A DNA stretch of 64,000 nt from Macrostomum lignano (GCA_002269645.1 NIVC01000886.1:1-64000), one strand, 5' to 3'. Counted from the first letter of the stretch, positions 2,307 through 43,188 are shown. Made by a program: numbers and translations. Notes: a model not told the origin generated them from the sequence alone.

Positions 2307-5132
<2,826 letters not shown>

Positions 5133-6856: not shown

Positions 6857-9800
6857 GCCGGGGCTGTTGCCCCAGGACCCCGGGTCCTGCACGTAATGGC
6901 GTGGTGAACTATCTGTGCAGTATGAGACTGGTGTGGCCTTTATCCCAGCCAGCGATGCTCACACCTGCCTCCCCTGGCAGGCCGATAGCTCAAGAGACTC
7001 TGTCTCCTGATTTTCACCTTGCAAGGCGCACTTCGAAGGGTACTCGTCCCGTGGGTGTTAAGGCAGGCCCCCTTGGGCCCTGCCGAGCTGATTCGTTGGC
7101 GCCGGGTCCTGGTGTGACCATAAACGCACCCTCTAATGTCCCAGTGTAACTCCGTGCTGATGGACGCTTGGCCAGGGAGTAGTCTGGTCGCTAACGGTTC
7201 CCCTTGCGCTTTTGGGTCCCCCGCAGGGTGGTATTTTGCTTTTTGGGGGCCTGCCGCTTGGTTTGGGGTTGCGGCCTTGCGGCTCTTTGCCTGTGTTCTG
7301 CAGGAAGTCCCACCTTTTTACTTCCAGCCAATGGCTTCTAACCGAAGTAACAAACCGGCTGTGGATGACACAGTGCCTCCGGCCTCGGCTGGGGCCGTGG
7401 ACTCCTCGGCCATACCACCTGCTACCATCGGGGACGCCTCGGCGAGACCCGTGGAGCCAACTCTAAGCGGTGCCTCCGAGAAGACACCTGCTACTCCAGC
7501 TGCTAAGCAACGCAGCACCACCTCTGGAGCTGCCCGCCGTCGACTTAACAAGGCGAGGCGGACCAAGGAGGGCGGAAGCCAAACCGGTGCCAGGGGCCAA
7601 CGGCCCGCGGCAGCGGAAGCTTCCCAGTCTGGGGCGGTGGCGGAAGAGGGCCTCGAGCCCACGGAAGCCCCTGCCCAGGATAGAGAGGCCGATGCAGCCG
7701 GGAGGGTGGACAGCCCACCTGAAGAAAGCTCCACTGACCCCCGGGCCTCCTACGCTGATGCGGCAAAGAGGCAACCGGCGGTTGTCATCCTGGGAAAGGA
7801 CGCGCGCCTGTCTCCCGATCAGCTGAAGCAGGTGAGAAGTGCCGTTGATGGCCTCCTGTGGAAGCTTACTCTGAAGGGCACGCCTCTGAGCATTCATTCG
7901 AATGCGACGAGGGACTCGTGCCTTCTCATTTGGCCCAGTGATGCTGACTCGGGTCGGCGGCTCCTTGAGCTGCTGCCCGAGCAGAGCTGGGACCTCAACC
8001 TAGCCTTCTGCAGAGAAGACGAGCGCCCCCGGACCAAGAGGCATCGAATCTGGGTCCCTGCCAGGAGCGTTGTTACCTCTGCTGACGAGCTCCGGAAAGG
8101 ACTGCTAGCAGTCAACCGAGAGCTTCCCGCCGCGGGCCTTGTGGTGCATGACACCCTTAAGCGCACCGACGGCACTGGCTTCACAGCCATCCTGGGGCTG
8201 TCGGACGCCTGGATGAGGCGTTATCCACACGGCAGCTTCATCAACGTCGGCCTTTGGAAGCTGCGCATCCGCTCCTACGAGGCCGACCCTCCCCGTGGCA
8301 GTGAGCAGGGCGGGCCGACCAAGCAAAAGCCTAAGGTCACTTGGAGTCGGAACGTCAGGAACACCGATTGGGCCGCCTTTGGCTCGAAGCTGAGCCGCGG
8401 CCTTCGGGATCTTGACCCCCCCCCAGTGACCTCTCTGACTGCCAGGTGGTGGATGATCTCGCCTCCTCCCTGAGTGGGGCGATCACCACTGCCTTTGAAG
8501 CAGCCTGCCCTCTAAAAGCCTATAAAGGCAAGAAATCTGCTCCCTGGTGGAACCCAGAGCTCGGGGCCCTTCGGCGCCGAGCCAGGACCCTCCAAAGGCG
8601 AGCGCTCAAAACCAAAGACCCATCTGACAGAGAGGCCTATACCCGTGCGATCCACGAGTTTAAGGGCCAAGTCAGAAGGGCCAAGACGGCCAAGTGGCGC
8701 CAATACTGCGAAGGGCTTGAGGGCTCTCGCCCCGTAGCCCGCGTGGTTAAGGCACTCACGAATGACCGTTTTTCTAAACTCTCTGATGTAAAGAGACCTG
8801 ACGGCTCGGTCACAGGGAGCTCTGAAGAGACTCTGGAGCTAATGCTCAACAGTTTCTTCCCTAAATCTCCGACCCAGCAGGGCCCGCCTGACCACACAGT
8901 GGGAGGACAAGGCCTAGCAAAGTCTATAATCACCAAAGACCGCATTATTAGAGCGGCAAGGTCCTTTAACCCGTTCAAGGCGCCTGGGCCCGACGGCATC
9001 TACCCAGCGTTCTTGCACGAGGCGGCGAAAAACCACCGCTTTCTGGACCTCCTCTGTCGTCTCCTCCGAGCTTGTGTGGAACTGGGCTATGTACCAGTTG
9101 CGTGGAGAGAGGCCCGGGCGGTCTTTATCCCCAAGCCTGGAAAGAGCGATTACCAATCGGTGAAGGCCTTCAGGCCTATCAGCCTCACTTCTTTCTGCCT
9201 CAAGCTCCTCGAGAGACTGGTGCTCTGGCGCCTACTTTCAGTCGAGCTGAAGCGCTTCCCACTCTCGCAGAACCAGCACGCCTTCCGCGCGGGCAGGTCT
9301 ACCGAGAGTGCCCTCCATGTCATTGTTGACTTCCTAGAGAGGGCCGTTCTTGGCAGCGGCTTTGCCCTCTCGCTTTTTCTGGACATTGAGGGGGCCTTCG
9401 ACAACGTCATCTTCGAGGCCTTTTGCAGAGCCCTGGAATCCAGGGCCATGCACCCTCACCTTGTCCGGTGGATCATGTTCATGATCCGGAACCGCACTGT
9501 TGTGGCCCACCTGAACGGCAGCTCTCTTTCGGCGCCTGTCCAAAAAGGGGGCCCCCAGGGCGGAGTTCTCACCCCGTTCTCTGGAACATGGTCATGGATG
9601 AGCTGCTTTGCAGTGATCTCCACGACCCCATTCTCAAGGTGGGCTATGCCGATGACGTGACCGCGATCTGCGCGGGCCCCTCGGTTGACACCATCAGAGA
9701 CCTTCTGCAGGGCTTTCTGGGACGAGCGGAGCGTTGGGCAAACCAATGTGGCCTTAGACTCTCAGAGTCGAAAACCACAGCAGTCATGTTTACCAACAAA

Positions 9801-11461
9801 CTGCTCTGGACCATTAAGCCCCTCACCCTCTATGGAAAGAACATTTCCATGGAGAAGCAGGTCCGCTGCCTGGGCCTCACTCTGGACCACAGGCTCAACT
9901 GGACTCCGCACATTTAAACTAAAGCCAAAAAAGCCCTGGCTGTCCTGGCTCAGATCAGGCGCGCCGTGGGCACCACCTGGGGGCTCACCCCCAGGAAGCT
10001 GTGGTGGATTTACACTGCAATCATCCGCCCCTCGATCAATTACGCCAGCCTCGTGTGGGCTAGCGGTCTGGGCGTCAAGAGTAACCTCGACGCTCTCTAC
10101 AAAATCCAGGGCAGAGCCTGCCGCATGACTATGGGCGCTCCACCCTCTACTCCTTTTGAAGGCATGAATGCCTTCCTCTGCACCCCTCCTCTGGATATTT
10201 ATATCAAAGGAGAGGCGGCGAAGAGCACCCGGCGTCTTCTGGATGCTGGGGTGGCCTTCAAGAAAGTGCGGGCCTTTAAGAAGCGGTCGCTTATCCCGCA
10301 CTCTGACCTCTGCCTCAAGGCTCTAGAAGAATGTGGCGGGCTCAACATCCTCTCGGACTCGATCCCAGCCACCCTTCTCCTGAGCCAAAGGTATAAGGTC
10401 ACTATTCAGCCTCGACATGAGGCGAGTGACAGCTGGAGCGATTCTGAAGTCCACTGTTACACTGACGGCTCTATGAAGCATGGTCTTTCAGGCTTCGGAG
10501 CGTGCGTCTTCTTCAAGGGAGAAGTGGCGTGGAGCTACTCCCAGCACACTGGGCTCAACTCCAGTGTTTTTCAGAGCGAGGTGCTTGCCATCAGCTCCTG
10601 CGCGGCAGAACTGCGCCGAAGGCAGCTTAGCGGTCGGAAGCTTATTTTTCACTCTGACAGCCAAGCAGCCCTTCGGGCCCTCTGCCGCTGCACCACCAGC
10701 TCCAGGTCCGTCCTGGACTGCAACACCCAGCTCAACGGGCTTGCGCTAGGCAACCAGGTAGAGCTCAGATGGATCCCGGGCCACGCCGGTTTCCTCGGCA
10801 ACGAGCGCGCCGACCTGCTGGCCAAGGCTGGCTCCGCCGGCGCGCTGCTGGGGCCGGGCCCGGGGCCCCCATCCCCGCCTCGGTGATCAACTCCCGCGTT
10901 AAGCGCTGGGCTGACTCCGAGCATCTCCGCAGGTGGCACGACACCCGGAATTGTAGGCAATCCCGGGCGGCCGTCCCCTGCCCCTCCCCTCTCCTGCGTA
11001 GAGCCCTCCTCAGGCTCAACCGCAGAGACCTCAGAGCAGTTAGCATGGCCCTCTCCGGGCATGGCTGCTTCTCTCGCCACCGCTTTCTTCAGGGCCAGGT
11101 ACCCGAGGAGCGGTGCCCCTTCTGCCGCTCAGGCAGTGAAAACGCCGAGCATTTTATCTGCCACTGCCCGGTTTTCACCAGGGCCAGGCTCACTCACCTC
11201 GGGCCAAACCCGGTTCTCTCCGACGTTTGCAGGCCCGAGAGCATCCCGCTGCTCGCCCGGTACCTCAGGGACACGGGACGAGCCGATTTCTTCCCCACTG
11301 TCGGTGAGGAGGATCGCGCTGCAGGCGAGACCGACGGGTCCCCCTGAGCGACTTCACTTCAACGGAAGTCATTGGTCGCCAGGGGCTAGCGGAATGGGCG
11401 GTCTCCTCCGCCTCCCCGCTGCATCCGCCGGACGCCCCCTGCAGCTAAGTCAAGTAAGTCA
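6857..11461 (+). mobile_element. Full-length LOA/R1-group non-LTR retrotransposon: ORF1-like domain, RT, RNase H and C-terminal Cys/His motif, with no endonuclease domain
   Basis: 13-bp TSD AGAGATTCAGATG at 6844-6856 and 11462-11474; 3' tail (TAAGTCAAG)x2 at 11446-11463; coding from ATG 7331 to stop 11347 with three single-base shifts (about 8420, 9575, 10865); RT GYADD, RNase H YTDGS, FQSEVLAI, FHSDSQAAL, WIPGHAG, GNERADLLAK; CPFC-ENAEHFICHCP. Confidence 0.92.
7331..11347 (+). CDS. Retroelement polyprotein: ORF1-like region (SGAARRR basic motif, DUF4780-like domain) joined to RT-RNase H; reconstructed across 3 frameshifts
   Basis: ORFs 7136-8473, 8446-9660, 9423-9917/9966-10886 and 10769-11347 join with one-base corrections in C or G runs. 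The DUF4780 resemblance is recalled, not searched. Confidence 0.75.
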
Positions 11462-12318: not shown

Positions 12319-13943
12319 ATGTCGACATTCAACCAGAAACTGGACAGCATGAAGGAGTCGCTCGCTTCGCTATTCAAAAGCCGTCGGACAAGCAAGTCGA
12401 GTCAGCGCACTACCAGCACCAGCAGCACTAGCTCTAACAATGCAACCGTCTGTCCGACTGAGGAAAGCGGCTCCGCCACCACGGCGAACACCATCTCGAC
12501 GCCGCAGAACGTCCGTCGTGTTCTGCATATCACTTTCGACGCTGGGCGACAGTCGTTCAGTGGCATTCCGGAGCACTGGAGGTCCTACTTTGGTCCCGCT
12601 GATAGCCACTCCTTTGCAGAGACTCTCACCGAAGCTGTCGAGGCGGAGACCCCACCTGGCGCTGTTAGAACAGACGATTCCGGCGTTTCCATGGCAACCA
12701 GTCCGAAGACGCCAACTTCAGCGGATCAGTCGGCCAACGAGAAGCCGCTAACGCCGCCCAAGGAGCTGCTGAGCCTGACCTACGACCGAAACAGCGGAAA
12801 GTTCGTCGACTTGCCGCCGCACTGGCAGGACCGACTGGAGCGCAACAACCTTCTGGAGCCCGAGTTCCAGAAGAATCCCGAGCTTCTCGTATCCGTGTTC
12901 GCCATGATGGACGAAGAGCTGAAGGCGATGAGTCTGGAAGGCATCAGTCTGGACAAGGGCATGTACTCGAGCTCGCCAGCTTCATCCAAAAATAACGACG
13001 GACTTAAGTAAGTGCTTTGCCTTGTTGAAACTAGTTTTACACTTTGCGTATGACACTGTACAGTAATAGAGTTCAATCTTTTTTTTGACGAGCTTGCATG
13101 CTACGACTGAGCTATTTTAGTATATCAAAAAATAGTTTAGGCATCGCTCATGATGTCAATTACAGCATCTTTCTGTTAGAAATCCTGCTGATCAATCTGG
13201 TGCCCTTCTAATGTCAATCTTATTCCCTTTTTATGTCACTCTGGTGTCACTCTGATGTCAAACTAGTGTCAATATATTGTCACTCTCTGTTGGGTCCTGC
13301 TGGTGTCAACCTCGTATTAATCTAGTGGGTTACTCTTATCACTCTGATGTACTGTATTTACTCACTTTACTGAACTTCAGGTAGGGTCCTTCCGTTGTCA
13401 CTCTGAAGTCACTCTGGTGTTACTTTAATGCCTCTCTGTTGTCACTCTGGTAGCTGGTTGTGATCTTGTGTAGTGGAGTCACTCTAGTGTCACTCTTTTT
13501 GTATAAGCAATCTTCCACAGTCGCCTTTTGTCCCTTCCCTTTAATTAAAGTTCCTCTTTTCTCTAATTAAAGCTGATGATACTCAAGTGCTACTCTTTCG
13601 TCATTCCGATGTTACTCGTTTCACTCTTTTATCACTTTAATGTTACTCTAGTGTCAAACTGGTGTCACTCTGGGTTCACTCTGGCCTGAATCTGACAGCA
13701 TCAAATGCGTAACGCCACCATCTACCACACTCCACTCGCATTTAACACACACGAAATCCACCAACATGTAGCTACGTGTACGAAATCGCTGCGGATAGTT
13801 CGAACTCCTCTAGCGAGCAGGACTTGCAACAGCAGCAGCAGCCCGAGCAGCCGACTAACCAGCAGCCGTCCAACTCGAGCTGGAATCGTCGTAGACCCTC
13901 GCTGGTTCGAATGCGAGCGGTAGCCGCTCCATCACTGAAGTGA
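12319..13943 (+). CDS. PAK-related CRIB/PBD protein with two PBD-like segments and no kinase domain (286 aa predicted)
   Basis: Exons 12319-13007 (donor GTAAGT, phase 2) and 13772-13943 (phase matches, stop TGA). Segments ISTPQNVRRVLHITFDAGRQSFSGIPEHW and TYDRNSGKFVDLPPHWQDRL-EFQKNPELLVSVF resemble the PAK1 PBD/inhibitory switch. Confidence 0.72.
13200..13690. repeat. Degenerate GTCACTCT-based intronic repeat
   Basis: Motif recurs irregularly inside the predicted intron 13008-13771. Confidence 0.6.
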
Positions 13944-16354: not shown

Positions 16355-19300
16355 TTAGTCTCCAAAAATCCCAGCAAAGGTGCGCCTAAGACTCTGGATC
16401 GCATCCGGCTCTTTCGAATCTTCGTTTGTTTTGACCGGATGCTGACCATCTGCCAGGGGCGATTTGACGACTATCGGTTGAGCTGGCAGCTGATTGTCGC
16501 AATGAGCTGAGTTGGACGATGGCGCGGCCGACATTCGAGCCAGAGTCAGCTCCGCCACGCTGCGCCTGATGCTGTCAGCCTCGTCTGGACAGAATTTGGA
16601 CGCCTCATCAAGCACCAGTTGCAGTGATTCTGAGCCGTGAGCCTTGGAGGATTGAATGAGACAGGCGTGGGAACAAAGTAAATTAGTTGGAGTGTAAATA
16701 TCCCAATTCTTGTTTTGGTGAGATTCGTTAAACGTTCTCTGCATCCTTGAAGGAAGTTTTGCAAAATTATCGAAAGAACTATTGTAGAGTCGTGTTTAAA
16801 AGCAATTTGGCAACATCCTTGAAAGCAATTTGGCGACATCCTTGAAAGCAATTTGGCAACATCCTTGAAAGCAATTTGGCAACATCCTTGAAAGCAATTT
16901 GGCGACATCCTTGAAAGCAACTTGGCAACATCCTTGAAAGCAATTTGGCAACATCCTTGAAAGCAATTTGGCAACATCCTTGAAAGCAGTTTGGCAACAT
17001 CCTTGAAAGCAATTTGGCGACATCAGCTTTAATAATATCAGAGATTCAAACAATACGCTCGTATGATCAGCTCACCATTGAAAGCGCACAACATATCGCC
17101 AAAATTAACGGCACTTACATCAACAATTTGCACGTCATCCTCGCTCCATTGCACGGCCTCCAACGAGCAAATGTCCAGTCCGCCAAAGTGGTCAGAAATC
17201 GCTTCAGTCCAGCTGCGCAGCCTGGATTTCCCGGAGAGAAAAGCAGTTTGATTCTTTGCTGGTAGTGATAAGAATGCTCAGTCACAATCACAATTCTTAC
17301 CTGTCCGTTACGGGAAGTTTCTCCACTGGACCGTCTTTTAAACCAACTTTTGATGTGCGTCGACTAAAATTAATCATAAATTTCCCAATTTGGCTAATTG
17401 CGAAAGGTTTACTAGAATGGAGAAATGAAGAAATAAGGCATACCGACAGACACACTATGACAGACTTAGTGTCTTCGTGTCTTCGTGCCTTGGTGTCTCA
17501 GTGTTTGAGACATTGAGATTTGCCGTCACGGTAACTACGTAAGACACTGATACACCAAGGAAGACACTAAAAAAGTCACTAAGACACTGCGAGACACAAA
17601 GACAATAAGACATCAAGACACCAATTACGCTCGTATAAGGTACTAAAACACTGATACATTAAGCGCTAAGCCGAGAAAGCACTAAAACAAGAAGACACTA
17701 TGACACTGAGATACTGAAACGATAAGACACTAAGTCGCGAAGACACCAGGACAAGAAGACACCACGACACCAAGACACTAAGACATTGAGACACTAAGAC
17801 GCTAAGTCGCGAAGACACCAGGACAAGAAGACACCACGACACCAAGACACTAAGACATTGAGACACTAAGACACTAAGTCGCGAAGACACCAGGACAAGA
17901 AGACACCACGACACCAAGACACTAAGACGCTGAGACACTAAGACACTAAGTCGCGAAGACACCAGGACAAGAAAACACTCAGGACAAGAAGACACCACGA
18001 CACCAAGACACTAAGACGCTGAGACACTAAGACACTAAGTCGCGAAGACACCAGGACAAGAAGACACCACGACACCAAGACACTAAGACGCTGAGACACT
18101 AAGACACTAAGTCGCGAAGACACCAGGACAAGAAGACACCACGACACCAAGACACTAAGACATTGAGACACTAAGACACTAAGTCGCGAAGACACCAGGA
18201 CAAGAAGACACCACGACACCAAGACACTAAGACATTGAGACACTAAGACACTAAGTCGCGAAGACACCAGGACAAGAAGACACCACGACACCAAGACACT
18301 AAGACGCTGAGACACTAAGACACTAAGTCGCGAAGACACCAGGACAAGAAAACACTCAGGACAAGAAGACACCACGACACCAAGACACTAAGACGCTGAG
18401 ACACTAAGACACTAAGTCGCGAAGACACCAGGACAAGAAGACACCACGACACCAAGACACTAAGACGCTGAGACACTAAGACACTAAGTCGCGAAGACAC
18501 CAGGACAAGAAAACACTCAGGACAAGAAGACACCACGACACCAAGACACTAAGACGCTGAGACACAAAGACAAGAAAACACTCAGGACAAGAAGACACCA
18601 CGACACCAAGACACTAAGACGCTGAGACACAAAGACAAGAAGATACCAGGACACAAAACCACTTAGAGAAATTTTTAGCCACATCAAAGCCATTCATTCT
18701 TCAGCTCACGCGAACGCCCAATAGTTTTTGTCAACTTTTTGCACAATAATTTCGTTGCTCGCTCCGAGAGCAGCCTCGGCTGTGCCCCACTTATGTTCAT
18801 AAGATGTTCCTCCAGCCGCAGCGAAAGCAGCAAAGTTCGACATCTCTTCCGCATTATTTGCAATGATCTGAAGTCAGTTTGATAGTTTGAATTATTTCAA
18901 AGACTGTTTCATATCTTGAAATTTAATTCCTCTTAACTGTACCTTTCCAAAGTTACCGTGACGGTTGCCAGACTTGAGCAATAACGGATAGGTGGCTTTT
19001 TGGTTGCTTAACGCCTGAAAAATTGTTTATTTTATTTTATTTTATTTTATTTTATTGAGAAAAATTTGTTTATTTTACTATTGAACAAGATGAAGAACAT
19101 ACAGGTAATTTTTTTCTTACCTGCTTGCGCCAATTTGAATAAAACGTCTGTTCAATTAACGGAAAATAGTTGTCTCCCAAACGTTTTTGAATTCGCGCCA
19201 AGTTGTTATACTGCGGAGCGGGAATTTTACTTGTATGAATTAATCAAATATAAAACAATTAGGAAACCCTTTCCTCGAAAAAAATAGCCACTTAAAAGTT

Positions 19301-34090: not shown

Positions 34091-34211
34091 GTTAGTTTAA
34101 TTTGCCTGCAACCAGTCAGACATCACAAGCGCCAATTGAAACACGTTACAAGTGTTGTTACTTCTGCAAGTCCCTATTTTCATCCGCCAAGACAAACAAA
34201 CAGAGCTCATC

Positions 34212-34433
34212 ATGTCCGATAACAAGTACCGCGAAGCCTTCCAGCAGTTCGACGAGGATGGCAACGGCGCCATCAGCTCCGACGAGCTGCGGACAGCTCT
34301 GCGCAGCGCCTTCGGCGAGATGGACGACTCCGAGATGGAGAATCTGCTGGCGATGAAAGGCGACAAGGAGTGCCTGGATATGGACGAGTTCGTGGCCTTC
34401 ATGCAATCTGTCGAGGCATCCCGCAGCGAGTAG
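34212..34433 (+). CDS. EF-hand gene 1: intronless 73-aa two-EF-hand (8-kDa type) calcium-binding protein
   Basis: Canonical loop DEDGNGAISSDE; second loop degenerate (KGDKECLDMDE). Confidence 0.9.
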   Translation: MSDNKYREAFQQFDEDGNGAISSDELRTALRSAFGEMDDSEMENLLAMKGDKECLDMDEFVAFMQSVEASRSE

Positions 34434-35064
34434 AGACCTCTGGCCCTGGAGAGCCGCTAGTCTTCTGTTGAACAACTTTTGTCTTGCCGTCAGATCCTTC
34501 AAATCAGTGTTTTTATACCCCTAAATATTAATTTCTTGCGCTTGAACTGTTAAATCGTAGTAGCTGAAATAAAAGTTGGCATTTCGAATTAGTCGACTCA
34601 AATCTCTTTTTAAACTGCGTCGGTTGTATTTGGGACTTTATTATTTTCAGTTCCATGAAAAATGTATCTCTCACAAATTGATTCAAAATGAAGCAATTAA
34701 GTCGTCGAAATTTGCAAAACTACGCTAAACAAGCTTTATAAAAGTTAAATATTATTCCATCGTAATTTTCAAAGATGTAGCTGACGTAAGGTATTGTATG
34801 TTTGTACGAGCTAAATTTAAATATAGAAACGTTTTGTATTTCTGCAACAGCTAACAAAACTGGGATCACGCGACAGAAACTATGTATCGAAAGTATCAGT
34901 ATCTATATCATTATCTGTTTCAGTATCAGGTGTAGGAACCGCAACAGTTCAGCCATTCTGCTGGGCAATTGATACTTGCGATGCTGGGGTTCATGTCTGG
35001 AGCGACTTTAACGGCAAGCTCAATGTAGACATTCTGAAAGTGTCTGCAGTCGAAATGTTTCGAA

Positions 35065-36270
35065 AAGGCGCCAAGGCTATACTATAAGGGGCGCCAAGGC
35101 TATACTATAAGGGGCGCCAAGGCTATACTATAAGAGGCGCCAAGGCTATACTATAAGGGGCGCCAAGGCTATACTATAAGGGGCGCCAAGGCTATACTAT
35201 AAGAGGCGCCAAGGCTATACTATAAGGGGCGCCAAGGCTATACTATAAGGGGCGCCAAGGCTATACTATAAGGGGCGCCAAGGCTATACTATAAGAGGCG
35301 CCAAGGCTATACTATAAGGGGCGCCAAGGCTATACTATAAGGGGCGCCAAGGCTATACTATAAGGGGCGCCAAGGCTATACTATAAGGGGCGCCAAGGCT
35401 ATACTATAAGGGGCGCCAAGGCTATACTATAAGAGGCGCCAAGGCTATACTATAAGGGGCGCCAAGGCTATACTATAAGGGGCGCCAAGGCTACACTATA
35501 AGGGGCGCCAAGGCTACACTATAAGAGGCGCCAAGGCTACACTATAAGGGGCGCCAAGGCTATACTATAAGGGGCGCCAAGGCTATACTATAAGGGGCGC
35601 CGCCAAGGCTGTACTATAAGGGGCGCCAAGGCTATACTATAAGGGGCGCCAAGGCTATACTATAAGGGGCGCCAAGGCTATACTATAAGGGGCGCCAAGG
35701 CTATACTATAAGGGGCGCCAAGGCTATACTATAAGGGGCGCCAAGGCTACACTATAAGGGGCGCCAAGACTATACTATAAGGGGTGCCAAGATACTATAA
35801 GGGGCGCGAAGATACTATAAGGGGCGCCAAGGCTACACTATAAGGGGCGCCAAGGCTATACTATAAGGGGCGCCAAGGCTGTACTATAAGAGGCGCCAAG
35901 ACACTATAAGGGGCGCCAAGGCTGTACTATAAGAGGCGCCAAGACACTATAAGGGGCGCCAAGGCTGTACTATAAGAGGCGCCAAGACACTATAAGGGGC
36001 GCCAAGGCTACACTATAAGAGGCGCCAAGACACTATAAGGGGAGCCAAGGCTATACTATAAGCGGCACCAGGGCTATACTATAGGCGGCGCCAAGGCTAT
36101 ACTATAAGCGGCACCAGGGCTATACTATAGGTGGCGCCAAGGCTATACTATAAGGGGCGCCAGGCTATACTATAAGGGGCGCCAGGCTATACTATAAGGG
36201 GCGCCAGGCTATACTATAAGGGGCGCCAAGGCTATACTATAAGGGGCGCCAGGCTATACTATAAGGGGTG
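35065..36270. repeat. 23-bp minisatellite (GGGGCGCCAAGGCTATACTATAA), about 52 units
   Basis: Period from 35101 and 35124. Confidence 0.97.
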
Positions 36271-36887
36271 CCATATTTTTTAAAACCAAGGACAGAGCGC
36301 CCCAGGCTGCGCCCTACGAGTCATCCTGATCGCCAACCAATTGATGGAAGTCCTTTGGCAGCCGAGTCACAAATGACATAGCATCATATAATGCATGAAG
36401 CTTGAACAATACAAACACCTGAATGATAAATAAAGTAAAATTATAATAAGTGTTACAATAACTTTTGTTGACAAAGTTCAGCTAGCAGGTTAATACACTG
36501 AAACGTGATGAGCGGAGATAAAAATTCCCCCGCGTCTGTAATTTTTTTAGCCCCACCCCTAAGTCTCAGCCATACACTGGAATAGTCAAGTCTCACTTGT
36601 GCTTTGACTTTGGTTGCATTTTGTAAAGTCAACTTCTATATAAGGCTGTCTGTGACGGCACCCAAAACTTCTGGCCACCCAATTAGAAAACTTCGTCGGA
36701 GTGGCTTAAGGGGGGGGGGTGAAAATCAAATCCATCTGACCGTCTCTGTGAGTAGTAGCCATTGATATTTTTGCTCTATAAATAGTGGCACCCCTACTCA
36801 AGACTGCAAGCCACTCAAGTGCCAACAAGCCATTCTGATCAACTTTTCAACTGTCTCGTAGTCAACCAAGTGTCTCGTCACTGCATC

Positions 36888-38267
36888 ATGTCCGACGACA
36901 AGTATATCGAAGTTTTCCAGAAGCTTGACGAAGACCGCGACGGATCCATCAGTCCGGACGAGATGGCCTCGGCTCTGCGAACAAGTTTTCCAGACATGGG
37001 CGACTCTGAGTTTGAGGTAAGAGTTTGAGTTAGTCTATTTTTTAATCCTTTTTTAGCGCCAGACTAGCTATCAACGCTCCCATAAGCCCTTGCGTCTCGG
37101 CAATACCTTACTCTCGCCGTGACATCTTAGCAACCCATCCGTAAGCCGTGACATCTTAGCAACCCATCCGTAAGCCGTGACATCTTAGTCAGCAACCCAT
37201 CCGTAAGCCGTGACATCTTAGCAACCCATCCGTAAGCCGTGACATCTTAGCAACCCCTCCGTAAGCCGTGACATCTTAGCAACCCCTCCGTAAGCCGTGA
37301 CATCTTAGCAACCCATCCGTAAGCCGTGACATCTTAGCAACCCCTCCGTAAGCCGTGACATCTTAGCAACCCCTCCGTTAGCCGTGACATCTTAGCAACC
37401 CATCCGTAAGCCGTGACATCTTAGTTAGCAACCCATCCGTAAGCCGTGACATCTTAGCAACCCATCCGTAAGCCGTGACATCTTAGCAACCCCTCCGTAA
37501 GCCGTGACATCTTAGCAACCCCTCCGTAAGTCGTGACATCTTAGTTAGCAACCCATCCGTAAGCCGTGACATCTTAGCAACCCATCCGTAAGCCGTGACA
37601 TCTTAGCAACCCATCCGTAAGCCGTGACATCTTAGCAACCCATCCGTAAGCCTTGACATCTTAGCAACCCCTCCGTAAGCCGTGACATCTTAGCAACCCC
37701 TCCGTAAGCCGTGACATCTTAGCAACCCCTCCATAAGCCGTGACATCTTAGCAACCCCTCCATAAGCCGTGACATCTTAGCAACCCCTCCGTAAGCCGTG
37801 ACATCTTAGCAACCCCTCCGTTAGCCGTGACATCTTAGCAACCCCTCCGTTAGCCGTGAAATCTCTGCAATTCCCCGCAAGCCTTATAACCCTGCAATTC
37901 ACATTTGCTCCCGACTCTCACTCTAAATTCGCAGAACATGCACAAGCTCGCCACCATGGGAGGAAGTCGCAGTCTGGGCCAGAACGATTTCGTCTCGTTC
38001 ATGAAAATCATGGAGATCAACGCCACCACGGACAAGGACCTCCTGCCAACCAGAGCGGTCCAGCTGTTCTATCTGGTTCACGACGAGTCCGAGGCTGTTG
38101 GCTGCGAGGAGCTTGCCAAGCTCAACCCGGCAGAGCACAACCTGACACCCGAGGAGGTTAACATTCTGGCGGTCATTTCCAAGCGTCTGCAGGATCGCGG
38201 TCTAGAAATGATCGGCTTTGCCAAACTCTGGCGTGACGTTCAGGCTGAGCTGCAGAAGAAGGAGTGA
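36888..38267 (+). CDS. EF-hand gene 2: calmodulin-like protein with one canonical loop (153 aa)
   Basis: Exons 36888-37016 and 37935-38267, phase 0; loop DEDRDGSISPDE; TATAAATA near 36776. Confidence 0.85.
37118..37860. repeat. 29-bp intronic minisatellite (GTAAGCCGTGACATCTTAGCAACCCMTCC)
   Basis: Period from 37141 and 37170. Confidence 0.96.
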
Positions 38268-38961
38268 TAAATAATCTGTGTAGCTGGGACGGTGTGCGCG
38301 CGCCCTCTAAGAAAAAATAAGCTTTTTTATAATTCCAATTGTTGATTTCAATAGTCAAGTTAATTAAATAAATCGGCATTTTTTCGGTTCGATTAAAAGC
38401 TTTACTATTATATCTGGCTTTCTTTTTCTTTGTTTTTCTCCTGAGAATGTACATGACTACATAGCTGAAGCCATTAACGCTCTAATAGGGCAGGTAATAC
38501 ATAAGAACTTTCTTATTTTTATTCTAGTCTAGTTGCAAGCGTTACAATACACAATACTTAATTATACATCTCTAATAAACCCCTCTGGCTTGTCTCTACA
38601 TTCTACTTGCTTCCGCAAGACTTTGAGCCTTTGTGAGTACACTCTCTATAGCTCTCTCTCTCTGATATTATATTCACCGTGCAGCTTAGCTAGGGTGAGA
38701 ACTGGCCATATTGTACCCCTCTTCTGCTGTCTCTTATTGAGCTCGATCTGGTCCAGAAACAACCGCGTACACACTTCGTAGGGTTATGAAAACTGAAACT
38801 AAACTATTTACTGATATTATTTCTACCCCGCCCCCTACCTAGCTAGACTTTCGTGTATATATCCGTGGACCAGGTGTGCTTTCTAGTGAGCTTGCGACTT
38901 CAAGTTTCCTCTGTCGTTTTCAGCGGTTGCAAAAACAAAAAACAAACAAAAGCCAATTGAC

Positions 38962-40471
38962 ATGGACGACAACAGGAAGTACAGAGATGTGTTTAAGCAG
39001 TTCGACCTAAACGGTGACGGTCACATCACCATCAATGAGCTGACAGTGGCTGTACAAGCTGCGGGAGTGAATATCAGCAAGGAGAGCCTACAGGTGAACA
39101 ACACTTGAATTTAAGCACTGGTATGGGCTGGGCGACTGTGCAAGGAGACTTCAGTGACTTCTTTTAGGCAAAATCACCCCGACTGAATAGCACTTGATCA
39201 CAGAATGACAGAATGACAGAATCACAGAATCACAGAATCACAGAATCACAGAATCACAAAATCACAGAGCTAGAGTCACAGAATCACAGAGCTAGAGTCA
39301 CAGAATCACAGAGCTAGAGTCACAGAATCACAGAATCACAGAGCTAAAGTCACAGAATCACAGAATCACGAATTCACAAGTTTTGCTAAAATCGATCACA
39401 TACCGACATAGACACAGACAAACCATTTTTAGCATATGGAAAAATCACAAAATCACAAAATCACAGAATCATAGAACCATATAGGAATCACAGTATCGCA
39501 AAATCATAGAATCACAGAATCAAATAAGAATCACAGAATTACAGAATCACAGAGCCAGAGTCACAGAATCACAGAATCACAGAATCACAGAATCACAGAA
39601 TCACAGAATCACAGAGTCACATAATCACAGAATCACAGAATCACAGAATCACAGAGCCAGAGTCACAGAATCACAGAATCACAGAATCACAGAATCACAG
39701 AGCCAGAGTCACAGAATCACAGAATCACAGAGCCAGAGTCACAGAATCACAGAATCACAGAATCACAGAGCCAGAGTCACAGAATCACAGAATCACAGAA
39801 TCACAGAATCACAGAGTCCCATAATCACAGAATCACAGAATCACAGAGTCAAATAAGAATCACAGAATCACAGAATCACAGAATCACAGAGTCAAATAAG
39901 AATCACAGAATCACAGAATCACAAAATCACAAAATCACAGAATCATAGAACCATATAGGAATCACAGTATCACATAATTATAGAATCACAGAATCAAATA
40001 AGAATCACAGAATCACAGAATCATAGAATCACGAGTTAGTCAAAAAGTCACATTATTAAATGATCACAGAATTCACGAGTTAGTCACAGAATCTCAGAAA
40101 CACAGAACCTGAAAACATTGAACATCCATCCTTATCGTAATTGTCTTCAGTCGATTCTCAAAAGCGCAGACATTGACTGCAGCGGCGGCTTGGACTATGA
40201 AGAATTCGTTGCATTCCTGAAACTGGCCTCAAAGACAGCAGCCCAGGACAGCGCTGAGACATCACCGCGACTTCAGCAGCTCTTCGATGTCGCATCTGAT
40301 GGATTCGATCTGGTGGGCCCTGACGAACTCAAAGCTCTCTCACCTGACGATCACGGACTGACCAGTCAGGAGTCCAAAGTCCTGACTGCTGTGATTGAGC
40401 TGCTCCAGGGTCGCAGCGTGGATCTCGCAGAGTTCGCTGACCTGTGGCGCAAAGCCGAGGCAGCCAGTTAG
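38962..40471 (+). CDS. EF-hand gene 3: calmodulin-like protein with two canonical N-lobe loops (150 aa)
   Basis: Exons 38962-39093 and 40151-40471, phase 0; loops DLNGDGHITINE and DIDCSGGLDYEE. Confidence 0.87.
39200..40110. repeat. 8-bp intronic repeat (CACAGAAT)n
   Basis: Read directly. Confidence 0.95.
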
Positions 40472-41747
40472 TGACTACAGGCGCCAAAATGATTCATCTG
40501 AACCACCTGGATAAATCTGATTTAATCAATAATTTAATCAATAATTTTAGCAGCTGAAAACTTCATGATAGATTCATAATCTTCGGTTCGTTTCTATAAA
40601 TTTAAAAATTTTTAAAAGTGCATTCGTGTGCAGCGAAAAAAAATAATTTTTTAAGCCAAGTAAGAACTTTTCCACTATTTCACTCATTATTTTGCTTTGT
40701 TTTTCATTAAATTTTAACGTTTTTACCATGCTCAGCAGCATGAAAACGATACTTATTCAATTTGTTTAAATTCGTGCTTCAGTATACTCTCGGCCTACTC
40801 GGAAATGTCGATTTTTTGTTTAACTGGCTAGCAAATGGTATTTAAATTTTCTATAGTGAAACTATAAACTATAAATATAAAAAGACGGCATCAAGATTTT
40901 GAGTTTTTGAGTCGACAGTCCTATACTTAAGCCCAAAAACAACTTACAGTGGACCCCACATATAGCCATGTACGTCGGGTGAACATCACAGAGAAAAAAG
41001 GCAAGCAAAGGAACGAAGGTAAATTAAGCTTCGAGGTCGAGTGGGGGTTAGGTCTTTTGAGAGTCTAACTTTTTTTAATGCGTTGCTTTGCCAAAAACCA
41101 AAAAAATAATAGAACCTGCGGAGATGTGCAATGGTTTTTAGCCTGAAATGAATCTAATAAATATACACTGCCGTACAGGCAGAGATGTTTGTAGAGACAG
41201 TTGAAAAATGACAATAGAAACTCTCTCTTAGCTGAGACACTCTTGAGCAGACACTGCCCAGTTACAGTAATAACTATAGGCGACAGAGAAATATGAACCT
41301 ATACGAAGGAATTTGATCGATGATAGGGGAGAGATGGTATAAAGACATTAGAGATATCGGCAGTTGAAGAGGCTCACTTAGAAAAAAATGTGAATAAGGC
41401 GTTAAACAGCGCATAAAAAATTTCATTCGTTGGGTAAGAGAGCCATTGCAGTTTAGCAGTATTAACAATTTCACCCACCCATCTTTTTGTGAGTTTACAA
41501 AGATGAAAGCAAACTTTTCTTTTGCTGGCTGTACTCAGAGAAACTTATAAAAAACAGCCGTACTCTCTAGCTGTGGCACACAATGAAAAGCACGCGGGGG
41601 TGGCTGTTGGACTGAGTGCCGTGCTCAAATATGCGCGCCCAAATTGATATTCAGAGCATATTTAAATAGTTTCGAAAATTTGATGCAGACAGAGTAGAGT
41701 AAATATTTATCTGGGCAAGCAGAGAAAAAAGCCTGATAAAAAGGCAC

Positions 41748-43188
41748 ATGGCAAAAATGTTTAAGCCGTCTACTTCTCACGACAGCATGTCGTCGCTGGA
41801 TGCGGCTCTGCTCGCGCAATACCGCGAGGCCTTCGACTCGTTCGACTCGAATCGGGACGGCCGGATCAGCATCAGGGAGCTGTCAGCGGTGATGGAGAAT
41901 CTGGGCGAGTCACCGAGCAAAAAAGAGCTCAAGGTAGGTGAGGTGTTTCACTTGAGTAAGGCGCCGTTTTTATGTGAGGATTGGCGCCATTTCAATTCAG
42001 GAGGCGCCATTTCATTTTATAGGGGCGCCATTTCATTTGATTGTGGGCGCCATTTCATTTGATTGTGGGCGCCATTTCATTTGATTGGGGTGCCATTTCA
42101 TTTGATTGTGGGCGCCATTTCATTTGATTGTGGCACCATTTCATTAGATTGGGGCGCCATTTCATTAAATTTGCTACTTCATTTAAGAGGTTGCCATTTT
42201 ATTTGAGGGGCGCCACTTTACTTGCGGTGGCGCCATTTCATTTGAAGGGCGCCGTTTCACTTTGAGGGGCGCCATTTTATTTGAGGTGGCGCCATTTTAA
42301 TTGAGGTGGCGCCATTTTATTTGAGGTGGCGCCATTTTATTTGATGTGGCGCCATTTTATTTGATGTGGCGCCATTTTATTTGAGGTGGTGCCATTTTAA
42401 TTGAGGTGGTGCCATTTTAATTGAAGTGGTGCCATTTTATTTAAGGTGTTGCCATTTTATTTGAGGTGGCGCCATTTTATTTGAGGTGGTGCCATTTTAA
42501 TTGAGGTGGTGCTATTTTAATTGAGGTGGTGCTATTTTAATTGAGGTAACGCCATTTTATTTGAGGTGGTGCCATTTTAATTGAGGTGGCGCCATTTTAA
42601 TTGAGGTGGTGCCATTTTATTTGAGGTGGTGCCATTTTAATTGAGGTGGCGCCATTTTAATTGAGGTGGTGCCATTTTATTTGAGGTGGCGCCATTTTAA
42701 TTAAGGTGGCGCCATTTTATTTGAGGTGGTGCCATTTTAATTGAGGTGGCGCCATTTTATTTGAGGGGCCTTAATAAATGAAGCCTTGCCTCCACTGTCG
42801 TCCCACTCCCCTCGGCGTATGTTTTATTAACTCAGTAAACCAGGGTAACAAAATAATAAATTTTGAAATATCTTCATTTCCAGGAAATGATCAAATCGGT
42901 CGACGGCGACGGCAGCGGCAAGATCGACTTCGACGAATTCATTCGCATGATGGAGGCCCGCACCGCCCAACGGATGAGTGACGCCGAGATGGCGGCAATT
43001 TTCGCGTCATGGACAAAAACAAAGACGGCATCATCACGCTGGACGAGCTTCGGATCGCCATGGACAACCTGGGCGAGGACATCACCGAGTCTGAGCTGCG
43101 CAAGATGCTGCGCCTGGCTGACAGCAACCGCGACGGCTGCATCGACTTTGCCGAGTTCAAAAAGTTGATGCAGTCGCTCGGAATGTGA
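41748..43188 (+). CDS. EF-hand gene 4: calmodulin-like protein with four canonical loops and an N-terminal extension; apparent 1-nt frameshift near 43000
   Basis: Exons 41748-41933 and 42884-43188; loops DSNRDGRISIRE, DGDGSGKIDFDE, DKNKDGIITLDE, DSNRDGCIDFAE; adding one base at ATTTTCGC restores AIFRVMD. Confidence 0.85.
41990..42770. repeat. About 20-bp intronic minisatellite (GGCGCCATTTTATTTGAGGT)
   Basis: Tandem units inside intron 41934-42883. Confidence 0.93.

Follow-up and report, generated by a model that had tools for sequence, protein, structure and literature searches.

The window analysed here comprises the first 64 kb of the Macrostomum lignano scaffold NIVC01000886.1 (assembly GCA_002269645.1). 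On its plus strand, positions 12319-13943 hold a two-exon gene for a protein of 286 residues, P0001, which carries two stretches related to the PBD of the PAK kinases and no kinase domain. An in-frame stop codon precedes the open reading frame (ORF) 12319-13011, which begins at the first possible start codon thereafter. The GT of the splice donor (GTAAGT) lies at 13008-9 and the acceptor AG at 13770-1, the intron phase is 2, and the product reads ...NDGL-N-YVYE... across the junction. A sequence-only reading of this DNA had placed the junction at 13007/13772, and the product of that splice is identical to the GenBank protein BOX15_Mlig019290g2; the peptides quoted in that reading all occur in the translation of 12319-13008 and 13770-13943. 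The gene is laid out as follows:

12319..13007, plus strand: exon 1, residues 1-229 and two bases of codon 230, encoding the N-terminal helix, segment 1, the linker and segment 2
12325..12384, plus strand: predicted N-terminal helix, residues 3-22 (...KLDSMKESLASLFKSRR), with an AlphaFold2 (AF2) confidence (predicted local distance difference test, pLDDT) of ~66, followed by a basic, Ser/Thr-rich stretch
12493..12591, plus strand: segment 1, residues 59-91, the CRIB-type PBD half ISTPQNVRRVLHITFDAGRQSFSGIPEHWRSYF, predicted β-hairpin and short helix, no inhibitory-switch helices
12598..12753, plus strand: linker, residues 94-145, low-complexity, predicted to be disordered (pLDDT <50), variable in length and poorly conserved among paralogues
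12754..12954, plus strand: segment 2, residues 146-212, the inhibitory-switch-type PBD half without CRIB (...LSLTYDRNSGKFVDLPPHWQDRLERNNLLEPEFQKNPELLVSVFAMMDEEL...), predicted hairpin and three helices
12964..12972, plus strand: (Y/H)-S-S motif, residues 216-218, after the last helix, with S217 and S218 invariant in 4/4 family members
13008..13771, plus strand: intron, 764 nucleotides, GT...AG, with 11-nucleotide TGTCACTCTGG-type repeats inside
13772..13943, plus strand: exon 2, tail residues 230-286, TGA stop codon at 13941-13943, same as in the GenBank model
13794..13823, plus strand: acidic Ser cluster DSSNSSSEQD, residues 238-247, which is DKSNSSSESD in P0002 and D(N/D)DSDSEE in P0003 and P0024
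13887..13907, plus strand: basophilic Ser site RRRPSLV, residues 269-275, with S273 and V275 invariant in 4/4 family members

The intronic repeats form a minisatellite at 13192-13684. The spliced protein ends in RRRPSLVRMRAVAAPSLK-stop and matches “hypothetical protein BOX15_Mlig019290g2” along its entire length with 100% identity; the UniRef name of the entry is “CRIB domain-containing protein”. Positions 2319-23943 of the record for this locus are base-identical to positions 2319-23943 of the window. The GenBank annotation of this assembly is based on a transcriptome assembled from RNA-seq with guidance from the genome, in which boundaries were defined by experiment (PMC5730564), and therefore both the junction and the 3' end of the P0001 gene are supported by transcript evidence. 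An unspliced transcript would also be kinase-free, because the TAA at 13009-13011 would end translation. The gene is genuine and, given the RNA-seq origin of its model, expressed; both GenBank and UniProt already list its product, as a CRIB-domain protein without further characterisation; the main texts and supplements of the literature searched contained no mention of it or of its identifier.

Compared with the Pfam PBD profile (PF00786; profile length 59, gathering cutoff 21.3 bits), P0001 scores 45.6 bits (E 9e-12) in two stretches. Segment 1 (residues 59-91) aligns with profile positions 2-34 of 59, which comprise the CRIB motif, the hairpin and P-x-x-W. The second stretch (residues 155-194), which reaches 23.6 bits when segment 2 is taken alone, covers profile positions 16-55, that is, the hairpin and the switch helices without the CRIB motif; segment 2 alone also passes as a PBD match in 3/4 family members. 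By sequence, the two segments correspond to complementary, overlapping halves of one PBD, in agreement with the split PAK autoinhibitory module that the sequence-only reading had proposed. Against the CRIB consensus I-S-x-P-x2-4-F-x-H-x2-H-V-G, segment 1 reads I-S-T-P-QN-V-R-R-VL-H-I-T: Ile, Ser, Pro and the second His are identical, the exchanges of Phe for Val and of Val for Ile are conservative, and the first His and the Gly are replaced by Arg and Thr. The description of segment 1 as CRIB-like and devoid of a switch tail holds, although the consensus Phe and first His have given way to Val and Arg. Segment 2 had been said to have lost the CRIB histidines; none of the CRIB signature residues is left in it.

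AF2 models, computed from a four-sequence alignment, predict strands at residues 72-74 and 79-81 and a helix at 85-91 in segment 1 (pLDDT 76-79), and a hairpin with three helices in segment 2, where a domain-only model has a pLDDT of 72-76 (mean 62). The features that mark the PAK autoinhibitory domain, a hairpin, three helices and the contact residue equivalent to Leu-107 of PAK1, are all predicted in segment 2, while the superposition is not significant. The models are consistent with the homology and add no independent proof; the remainder of P0001 is largely disordered according to the prediction.

The absence of a kinase domain, claimed in the sequence-only reading, was confirmed by several searches. 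The kinase domains of three PAKs gave nothing better than E 1.2 in a tblastn search of the 64-kb window. A kinase hidden Markov model (HMM) made from three PAK domains reached a best E of 4.6 over 2541 ORF fragments of at least 15 residues from the window; partial kinases, used as positive controls, scored 63-100 bits. The same searches detected no kinase-like sequence within 10 kb on either side of the two other copies of the gene and of the paralogue P0002, and the HMM detected no kinase among ORF fragments within 50 kb of the gene. Hidden kinase exons, considered as an explanation, are ruled out by these tblastn and HMM results on the window ORFs and on the other loci. P0001 lacks the C-terminal Ser/Thr kinase domain of a group I PAK, the position of its stop codon is conserved among the paralogues, and neither the gene nor its copies or paralogues contain a kinase domain. 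Two of the three outcomes named as fatal to the sequence-only reading were not observed. The first was splicing on to downstream kinase exons; the window holds none, and in P0002 segment 2 and the tail end in a single exon with its stop codon. The second was that all orthologs carry a kinase; P0002, P0003 and P0024 are kinase-free.

Together with P0001, these three proteins form a family of four members that share the whole architecture; three of the four represent separate paralogue groups of M. lignano, and the fourth comes from a transcript contig of another sample. P0002 (BOX15_Mlig032438g3, 351 residues) is 46-48% identical to P0001 and has every block, namely the N-terminal helix, ISTPQNVKRVMHITFN..., LPPHWEERLKRNNL...NPQLLSSVF, YSS, DKSNSSSESD and QRRSLVTVRAV. 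Its single intron lies in the linker in phase 0, and its segment 2 and tail form one contiguous exon that ends in the stop codon, so that the junction and the true C-terminus of P0001 are independently supported. P0024 (UniRef A0A1I8JHG2) represents the third paralogue group. P0003 has 259 residues and is 48% identical to P0024, with conservation confined to the same blocks; it is encoded by an uninterrupted ORF with a stop codon and a downstream AATAAA on a 990-nucleotide contig from run SRR28338165, which is most simply explained as a transcript from a related species.

Paralogues at 33-48% identity keep both the architecture and the stop position. Conservation is concentrated in the ordered blocks and the C-terminal site, and the linkers drift: A16 and S17 are invariant in 4/4 members, and segment 2 has 25 family-invariant residues. 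The C-terminal Ser is conserved family-wide in the form R-x(0,1)-S-[LF]-V, which as a motif fits a PKA-type consensus, as the sequence-only reading had suggested. A profile search of 1.84 billion representative proteins revealed no further relative with the full architecture, and word-indexed searches of 5.8 billion proteins revealed none outside Macrostomum and no ortholog in another flatworm or other animal; the other matches in those searches came through the CRIB motif alone. Judged by these searches, the family appears to be restricted to Macrostomum. A further UniRef entry from M. lignano, P0025 (labelled “HTH APSES-type”), matches P0024 from residue ~34/39 onwards and lacks the hairpin and first helices of segment 2 (...RWSS|ELRKMD...); two explanations come into question, a mis-assembly or an isoform from which splicing has removed the switch half.

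Three loci encode the same P0001 sequence. Of these, two (NIVC01000102.1:116648-138290, reversed, and NIVC01000102.1:5665-27300) are inverted copies ~100 kb apart on one scaffold, and the three copies are ~97% identical in non-coding DNA. Such an arrangement is in keeping with the large-scale duplication known from the DV1 line of M. lignano, whose genome is massively duplicated and rich in repeats (PMC5730564). In an alignment of the three copies, 3 of the 861 exonic sites vary (2/689 in exon 1 and 1/172 in exon 2), all at third codon positions and all synonymous. The intron varies in 17 of 787 columns and the flanks in 14/868 and 23/818, and the non-coding total is 54 variable sites in ~2275 ungapped columns, or ~2.4%. 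At that rate ~20 exonic changes would be expected, and by our own estimate the Poisson probability of three or fewer is ~2e-6. Purifying selection on the gene follows from the contrast between these few, entirely silent exonic differences and the ~2.4% divergence of intron and flanks. Downstream of the stop codon, over 2.4 kb (to 16.4 kb), the three copies show no island of low divergence, and a hidden conserved exon was rejected for that stretch because the divergence bins show none.

The same data bear on the possibility that the gene is an artefact or a relic, that is, a truncated model, a fragment of a pseudogenised PAK duplicate or a functionless product of assembly redundancy. The massive duplication and repeats of DV1 and a retrotransposon 0.9 kb upstream could be taken to favour this view. 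Nevertheless, we consider it highly improbable: conservation is specific to the exons with synonymous changes only, the paralogues have kept architecture and stop position at 33-48% identity, the ortholog contig of P0003 resembles an intron-free transcript with stop codon and AATAAA, and the GenBank model is derived from RNA-seq with no kinase within 50 kb. A pseudogene or relic was rejected on the strength of the synonymous-only pattern and of the conservation among paralogues.

What could such a protein do? The reading that we rank best, and hold with moderate confidence on the basis of homology, is that P0001 is a non-catalytic regulator in the Rho-GTPase (Cdc42/Rac) pathway that is built from PAK regulatory parts. 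Because it has no catalytic domain, it would act by binding. Through segment 1, the family profile picks up CRIB peptides of PAK1, PAK2, PAK4 and PAK6 from GTPase complexes in the PDB (E 4e-6 to 1e-2), and the CRIB-peptide structures 1ees, 1e0a, 2ov2, 2odb and 5upk are similar to it. The likely GTPase-docking element is segment 1, which would bind a GTP-bound Cdc42/Rac-type GTPase; it extends as far as the CRIB peptides crystallised with Cdc42/Rac, and in most members basic residues stand in front of it. The CRIB histidines matter for GTPase binding in PAK1, and the Arg in place of the first of them might pair with the Asp of the effector loop all the same. Segment 2 would fold as an inhibitory-switch-like bundle and engage a partner, for which the most obvious candidate would be the kinase domain of a group I PAK, as with the PAK1 fragment 83-149 (“PID”) in trans. 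Since CRIB and switch reside on separate modules ~60 residues apart, the unfolding of the switch that GTPase binding brings about in PAK would not be expected here, and P0001 would recruit, or compete with, the GTPase rather than be released by it. The conserved Ser site may offer phospho-control.

The small size of P0001, its predominant disorder and the basic stretch before its CRIB motif, properties shared by many CRIB effectors, also suggest, within this reading, a plainer account, in which P0001 is a kinase-less GTPase effector or adaptor comparable to BORG/CEP, SPEC, plant RIC or yeast Gic, both segments would serve GTPase binding or intramolecular regulation, and there would be no link to PAK. 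In one variant, segment 2 might mask segment 1 or be a second, low-affinity GTPase contact. According to the textbook picture, the hairpin and the first helix after the CRIB motif also touch the GTPase in PAK-Cdc42 complexes, and kinase-free proteins of PBD repeats exist elsewhere (P0004, P0005, P0011, P0017). However, a Pfam scan of P0001 at E<=10 returned the PBD and one spurious Ctr match only, with no BORG/CEP, SPEC or WASP-type domain, and conservation is strongest in the switch helices, the element that faces the kinase in PAK. To us this account appears possible but doubtful. The repeat proteins themselves (P0004, P0005/P0022, P0011 and P0017, from JGI metagenomes) consist almost wholly of 4-6 or more tandem PBD repeats including switch helices; P0004 has a hydrophobic segment at its N-terminus.

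A more specific form of the pathway-regulator reading arises from the similarity of segment 2 to PAK1. With a profile of segment 2 only, the best match in the PDB (1.8e5 sequences) is 1f3m_A, the autoinhibitory fragment of PAK1 (1F3M; E 5.8e-4), followed by PAK2 chains. In the alignment, W169, L173, E182 and N186-P187 of P0001 correspond to W103, L107, E116 and N120-P121 of PAK1, and every family member has a Leu at the position of L173. Segment 2, equivalent to PAK1 residues ~85-133, represents the portion of PAK that packs against the large lobe of the kinase; the HMMER alignment to PAK1 ends at the equivalent of residue ~133, with a low-confidence extension to PAK2 only. The PID inhibits all group I PAKs in trans, and the exchange L107F abolishes this inhibition (PMC6110733). 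Because segment 2 covers the PID region and the equivalent of L107 is invariant, a PID-like action on PAK is a reasonable specific hypothesis.

P0001 would then be a dedicated trans-inhibitor of PAK, with segment 2 as a natural PID that is insensitive to GTPases for want of a CRIB motif, and with segment 1 targeting it to active Cdc42/Rac or sequestering these. Like the experimental fragment 83-149, segment 2 (~PAK1 85-133) lacks the N-terminal CRIB half. PAK prefers substrates with Arg at -2/-3 and hydrophobic residues at +1/+2. The site RRRPSLV has both; it fits the preference of PAK as well as that of PKA, and it resembles the PAK4 pseudosubstrate RPKPLV. As a claim from homology this remains tentative, and we regard it as unlikely for the first three of the reasons that follow.

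Several observations count against a regulator made of PAK parts, and the first three against PAK inhibition in particular. The kinase-inhibitor segment of PAK1 (residues 136-149, with K141, which reaches into the catalytic cleft) has no recognisable counterpart in the alignments of P0001; a Lys near the K141-equivalent place is present in P0001 (DKGMYSS) and absent from P0002, P0003 and P0024, and the (Y/H)-S-S motif lies at about the position of this segment, without significant alignment. The homology of segment 2 to the autoinhibitory domain of PAK1/2 is modest (E 6e-4 against the 1.8e5 PDB sequences). The position of PAK1 D126 is Ser or Ala in the family. GTPase binding by segment 1 is not assured, because the CRIB Phe and first His are replaced. 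The full-length AF2 model has a mean pLDDT of 51, with ordered islands only, and the top Foldseek matches, although they are the PAK4 CRIB, PAK1 1F3M and full-length PAK2, are non-significant (E 0.1-0.7). Finally, with only four known members the conservation statistics are thin.

Could P0001 be the macrostomid equivalent of the PID? In PAK, autoinhibition is the textbook case of overlapping GTPase-binding and inhibitory modules, and the isolated inhibitory fragment is a standard experimental tool; we know of no endogenous protein that is just this fragment. A GTPase-insensitive PAK autoinhibitory module, joined to a separate Cdc42/Rac-docking CRIB element and a conserved basophilic phosphosite, might silence group I PAK, or buffer it, at exactly those places at which the GTPase acts. 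We offer this, from sequence comparison, as a speculation that is probably not correct. If it were true, P0001 would be the first homologue of the PAK autoinhibitory domain to act in trans as an endogenous protein, and the natural uncoupling of the GTPase-binding from the inhibitory half would show regulatory domains becoming free-standing regulators. M. lignano is amenable to transgenesis and RNA interference, so the hypothesis can be tested there. Should P0001 be only a lineage-specific CRIB adaptor, the gain would be a modest one, the annotation of a “hypothetical protein”.

The sequence-only reading had further proposed that the PBD was duplicated. In its favour, the hairpins of segments 1 and 2 are similar (29% identity in 24 residues), but a layout of a short plus a long PBD in protists leaves tandem-PBD ancestry as an alternative. 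The next-best matches of the family profile, reached through segment 1, are protist PAK-like kinases, P0020 (EP00761_P003036 of Pharyngomonas kirbyi) and the metagenomic P0013 and P0016, together with similar fragments. All three have two PBDs and a kinase domain; the first PBD is short, with a Val/Arg CRIB variant (xSxPTNVQRVLHVEWD) and no switch helices, and the second is canonical, with both CRIB histidines and the switch helices. P0008, from Ancoracysta twista, is likewise a two-PBD protist PAK-like kinase, with the short Val/Arg form devoid of switch helices first and a canonical PBD second. With the segment 1 profile, the first PBDs of the protist kinases score 32-45 bits, the CRIB motifs of human PAK1/2 ~30 and the second protist PBDs 19-30, which makes the first PBD of these kinases the closest relative of segment 1 outside the family; the margin is inflated because these sequences were picked as best matches.

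A layout of a short variant PBD followed by a long one is not unique to the flatworm protein, which could go back to an ancient tandem of PBDs instead of a recent duplication. The two segments would then be the remnant of the N-terminus of a tandem-PBD PAK that has lost its kinase and its second CRIB motif, and not a flatworm-specific duplication. P0013, P0016 and P0020 display exactly this layout, and their first PBDs share the Val/Arg variant and score higher with the segment 1 profile. Yet they are the best matches out of 1.8 billion proteins, which raises their scores by selection, the motif is short and possibly convergent, no animal tandem-PBD PAK was found in these searches, and the hairpins of the two segments resemble each other. 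On balance, we think such a descent rather unlikely.

In the vicinity of the gene, the convergent synapsin gene of the sequence-only reading could not be substantiated: the minus-strand ORFs at 14-33 kb have no significant Pfam match, and the records list no further gene within 10 kb. A DIP2-like gene at 56-63 kb, which would have been syntenic with the DIP2 neighbour of the paralogue, was dropped for lack of Pfam or tblastn support. Upstream, pieces of a non-LTR (long terminal repeat) retrotransposon lie on the plus strand at 2417-3373, 8446-9660 and 9966-10886, with endonuclease, reverse transcriptase and RNase H identified by Pfam; they end ~0.9 kb upstream of the ATG of the gene and form a GC-rich block at 8-12 kb. 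The two other copies align with the window copy only up to ~5.1 kb and again from ~11.46 kb. Because they do not align in between, the retrotransposon appears to be specific to the window copy.

Downstream, 200-bp bins with zero substitutions among the three copies, at 16400-16600, 17200-17400 and 18600-19000, probably mark the exons of a gene missing from the annotation; Pfam gives no match for the minus-strand ORF 16358-16795. Long minisatellite arrays at 16.5-18.7, 21.7-22.2, 23.3-24.1 and 27.6-30.4 kb produce long but spurious ORFs in several frames. On the plus strand, 34140-43165 is occupied by small ORFs of the EF-hand (calmodulin-like) type in a tandem array, two of them confirmed by Pfam:

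34140-34430, plus strand: EF-hand ORF
36786-37025, plus strand: EF-hand ORF
38890-39105, plus strand: EF-hand ORF
40064-40468, plus strand: EF-hand ORF
41703-42059, plus strand: EF-hand ORF
42860-43165, plus strand: EF-hand ORF

A comparison with known systems places P0001 closest to the regulatory region of group I PAKs (PF00786; PAK1 residues 70-149, 1F3M; PAK2, 9M41/9LBF), with which it shares a CRIB-type motif, the β-hairpin, P-x-x-W, three putative switch helices with the N-P turn and the L107 equivalent; the PBD matches of both segments lie above the Pfam cutoff. In contrast to a group I PAK, the domain is distributed over two modules ~60 residues apart, there is neither a kinase nor a PIX/Nck proline motif, Val and Arg replace the Phe and the first His of the CRIB motif, the second module is without CRIB, and the K141 segment is not recognisable. 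Segment 2 represents the same part of the domain as the PID of PAK1 (residues 83-149), without the GTPase-binding N-terminal CRIB half and with the Leu of the L107F site. Unlike the PID, it is a natural gene product and not a construct, and the C-terminal third, equivalent to 136-149, is not conserved.

The kinase-free CRIB effectors (CDC42EP/BORG, CDC42SE/SPEC, WASP/N-WASP, plant RICs and yeast Gic1/2) are, like P0001, small, largely disordered and non-catalytic, carry the CRIB motif after basic residues and act by binding; unlike P0001, they have no PAK-type inhibitory-switch helices, and they share no homology with it beyond the CRIB motif. The protist tandem-PBD kinases have two PBD modules in the same order, the short Val/Arg form first and the long one with switch helices second, but they retain the kinase domain and, in the second PBD, both CRIB histidines. 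A further parallel is the semi-CRIB of Par6, which is incomplete, lacks the consensus histidines and can still bind Cdc42; Par6 requires the adjacent PDZ domain for this, whereas P0001 has none. By its score P0001 belongs to the Pfam PBD family; the missing kinase separates it from the PAKs, and the absence of their characteristic domains from the BORG, SPEC and WASP types. The description that suits its sequence best is that of a split PAK regulatory region, free-standing and apparently restricted to one lineage.

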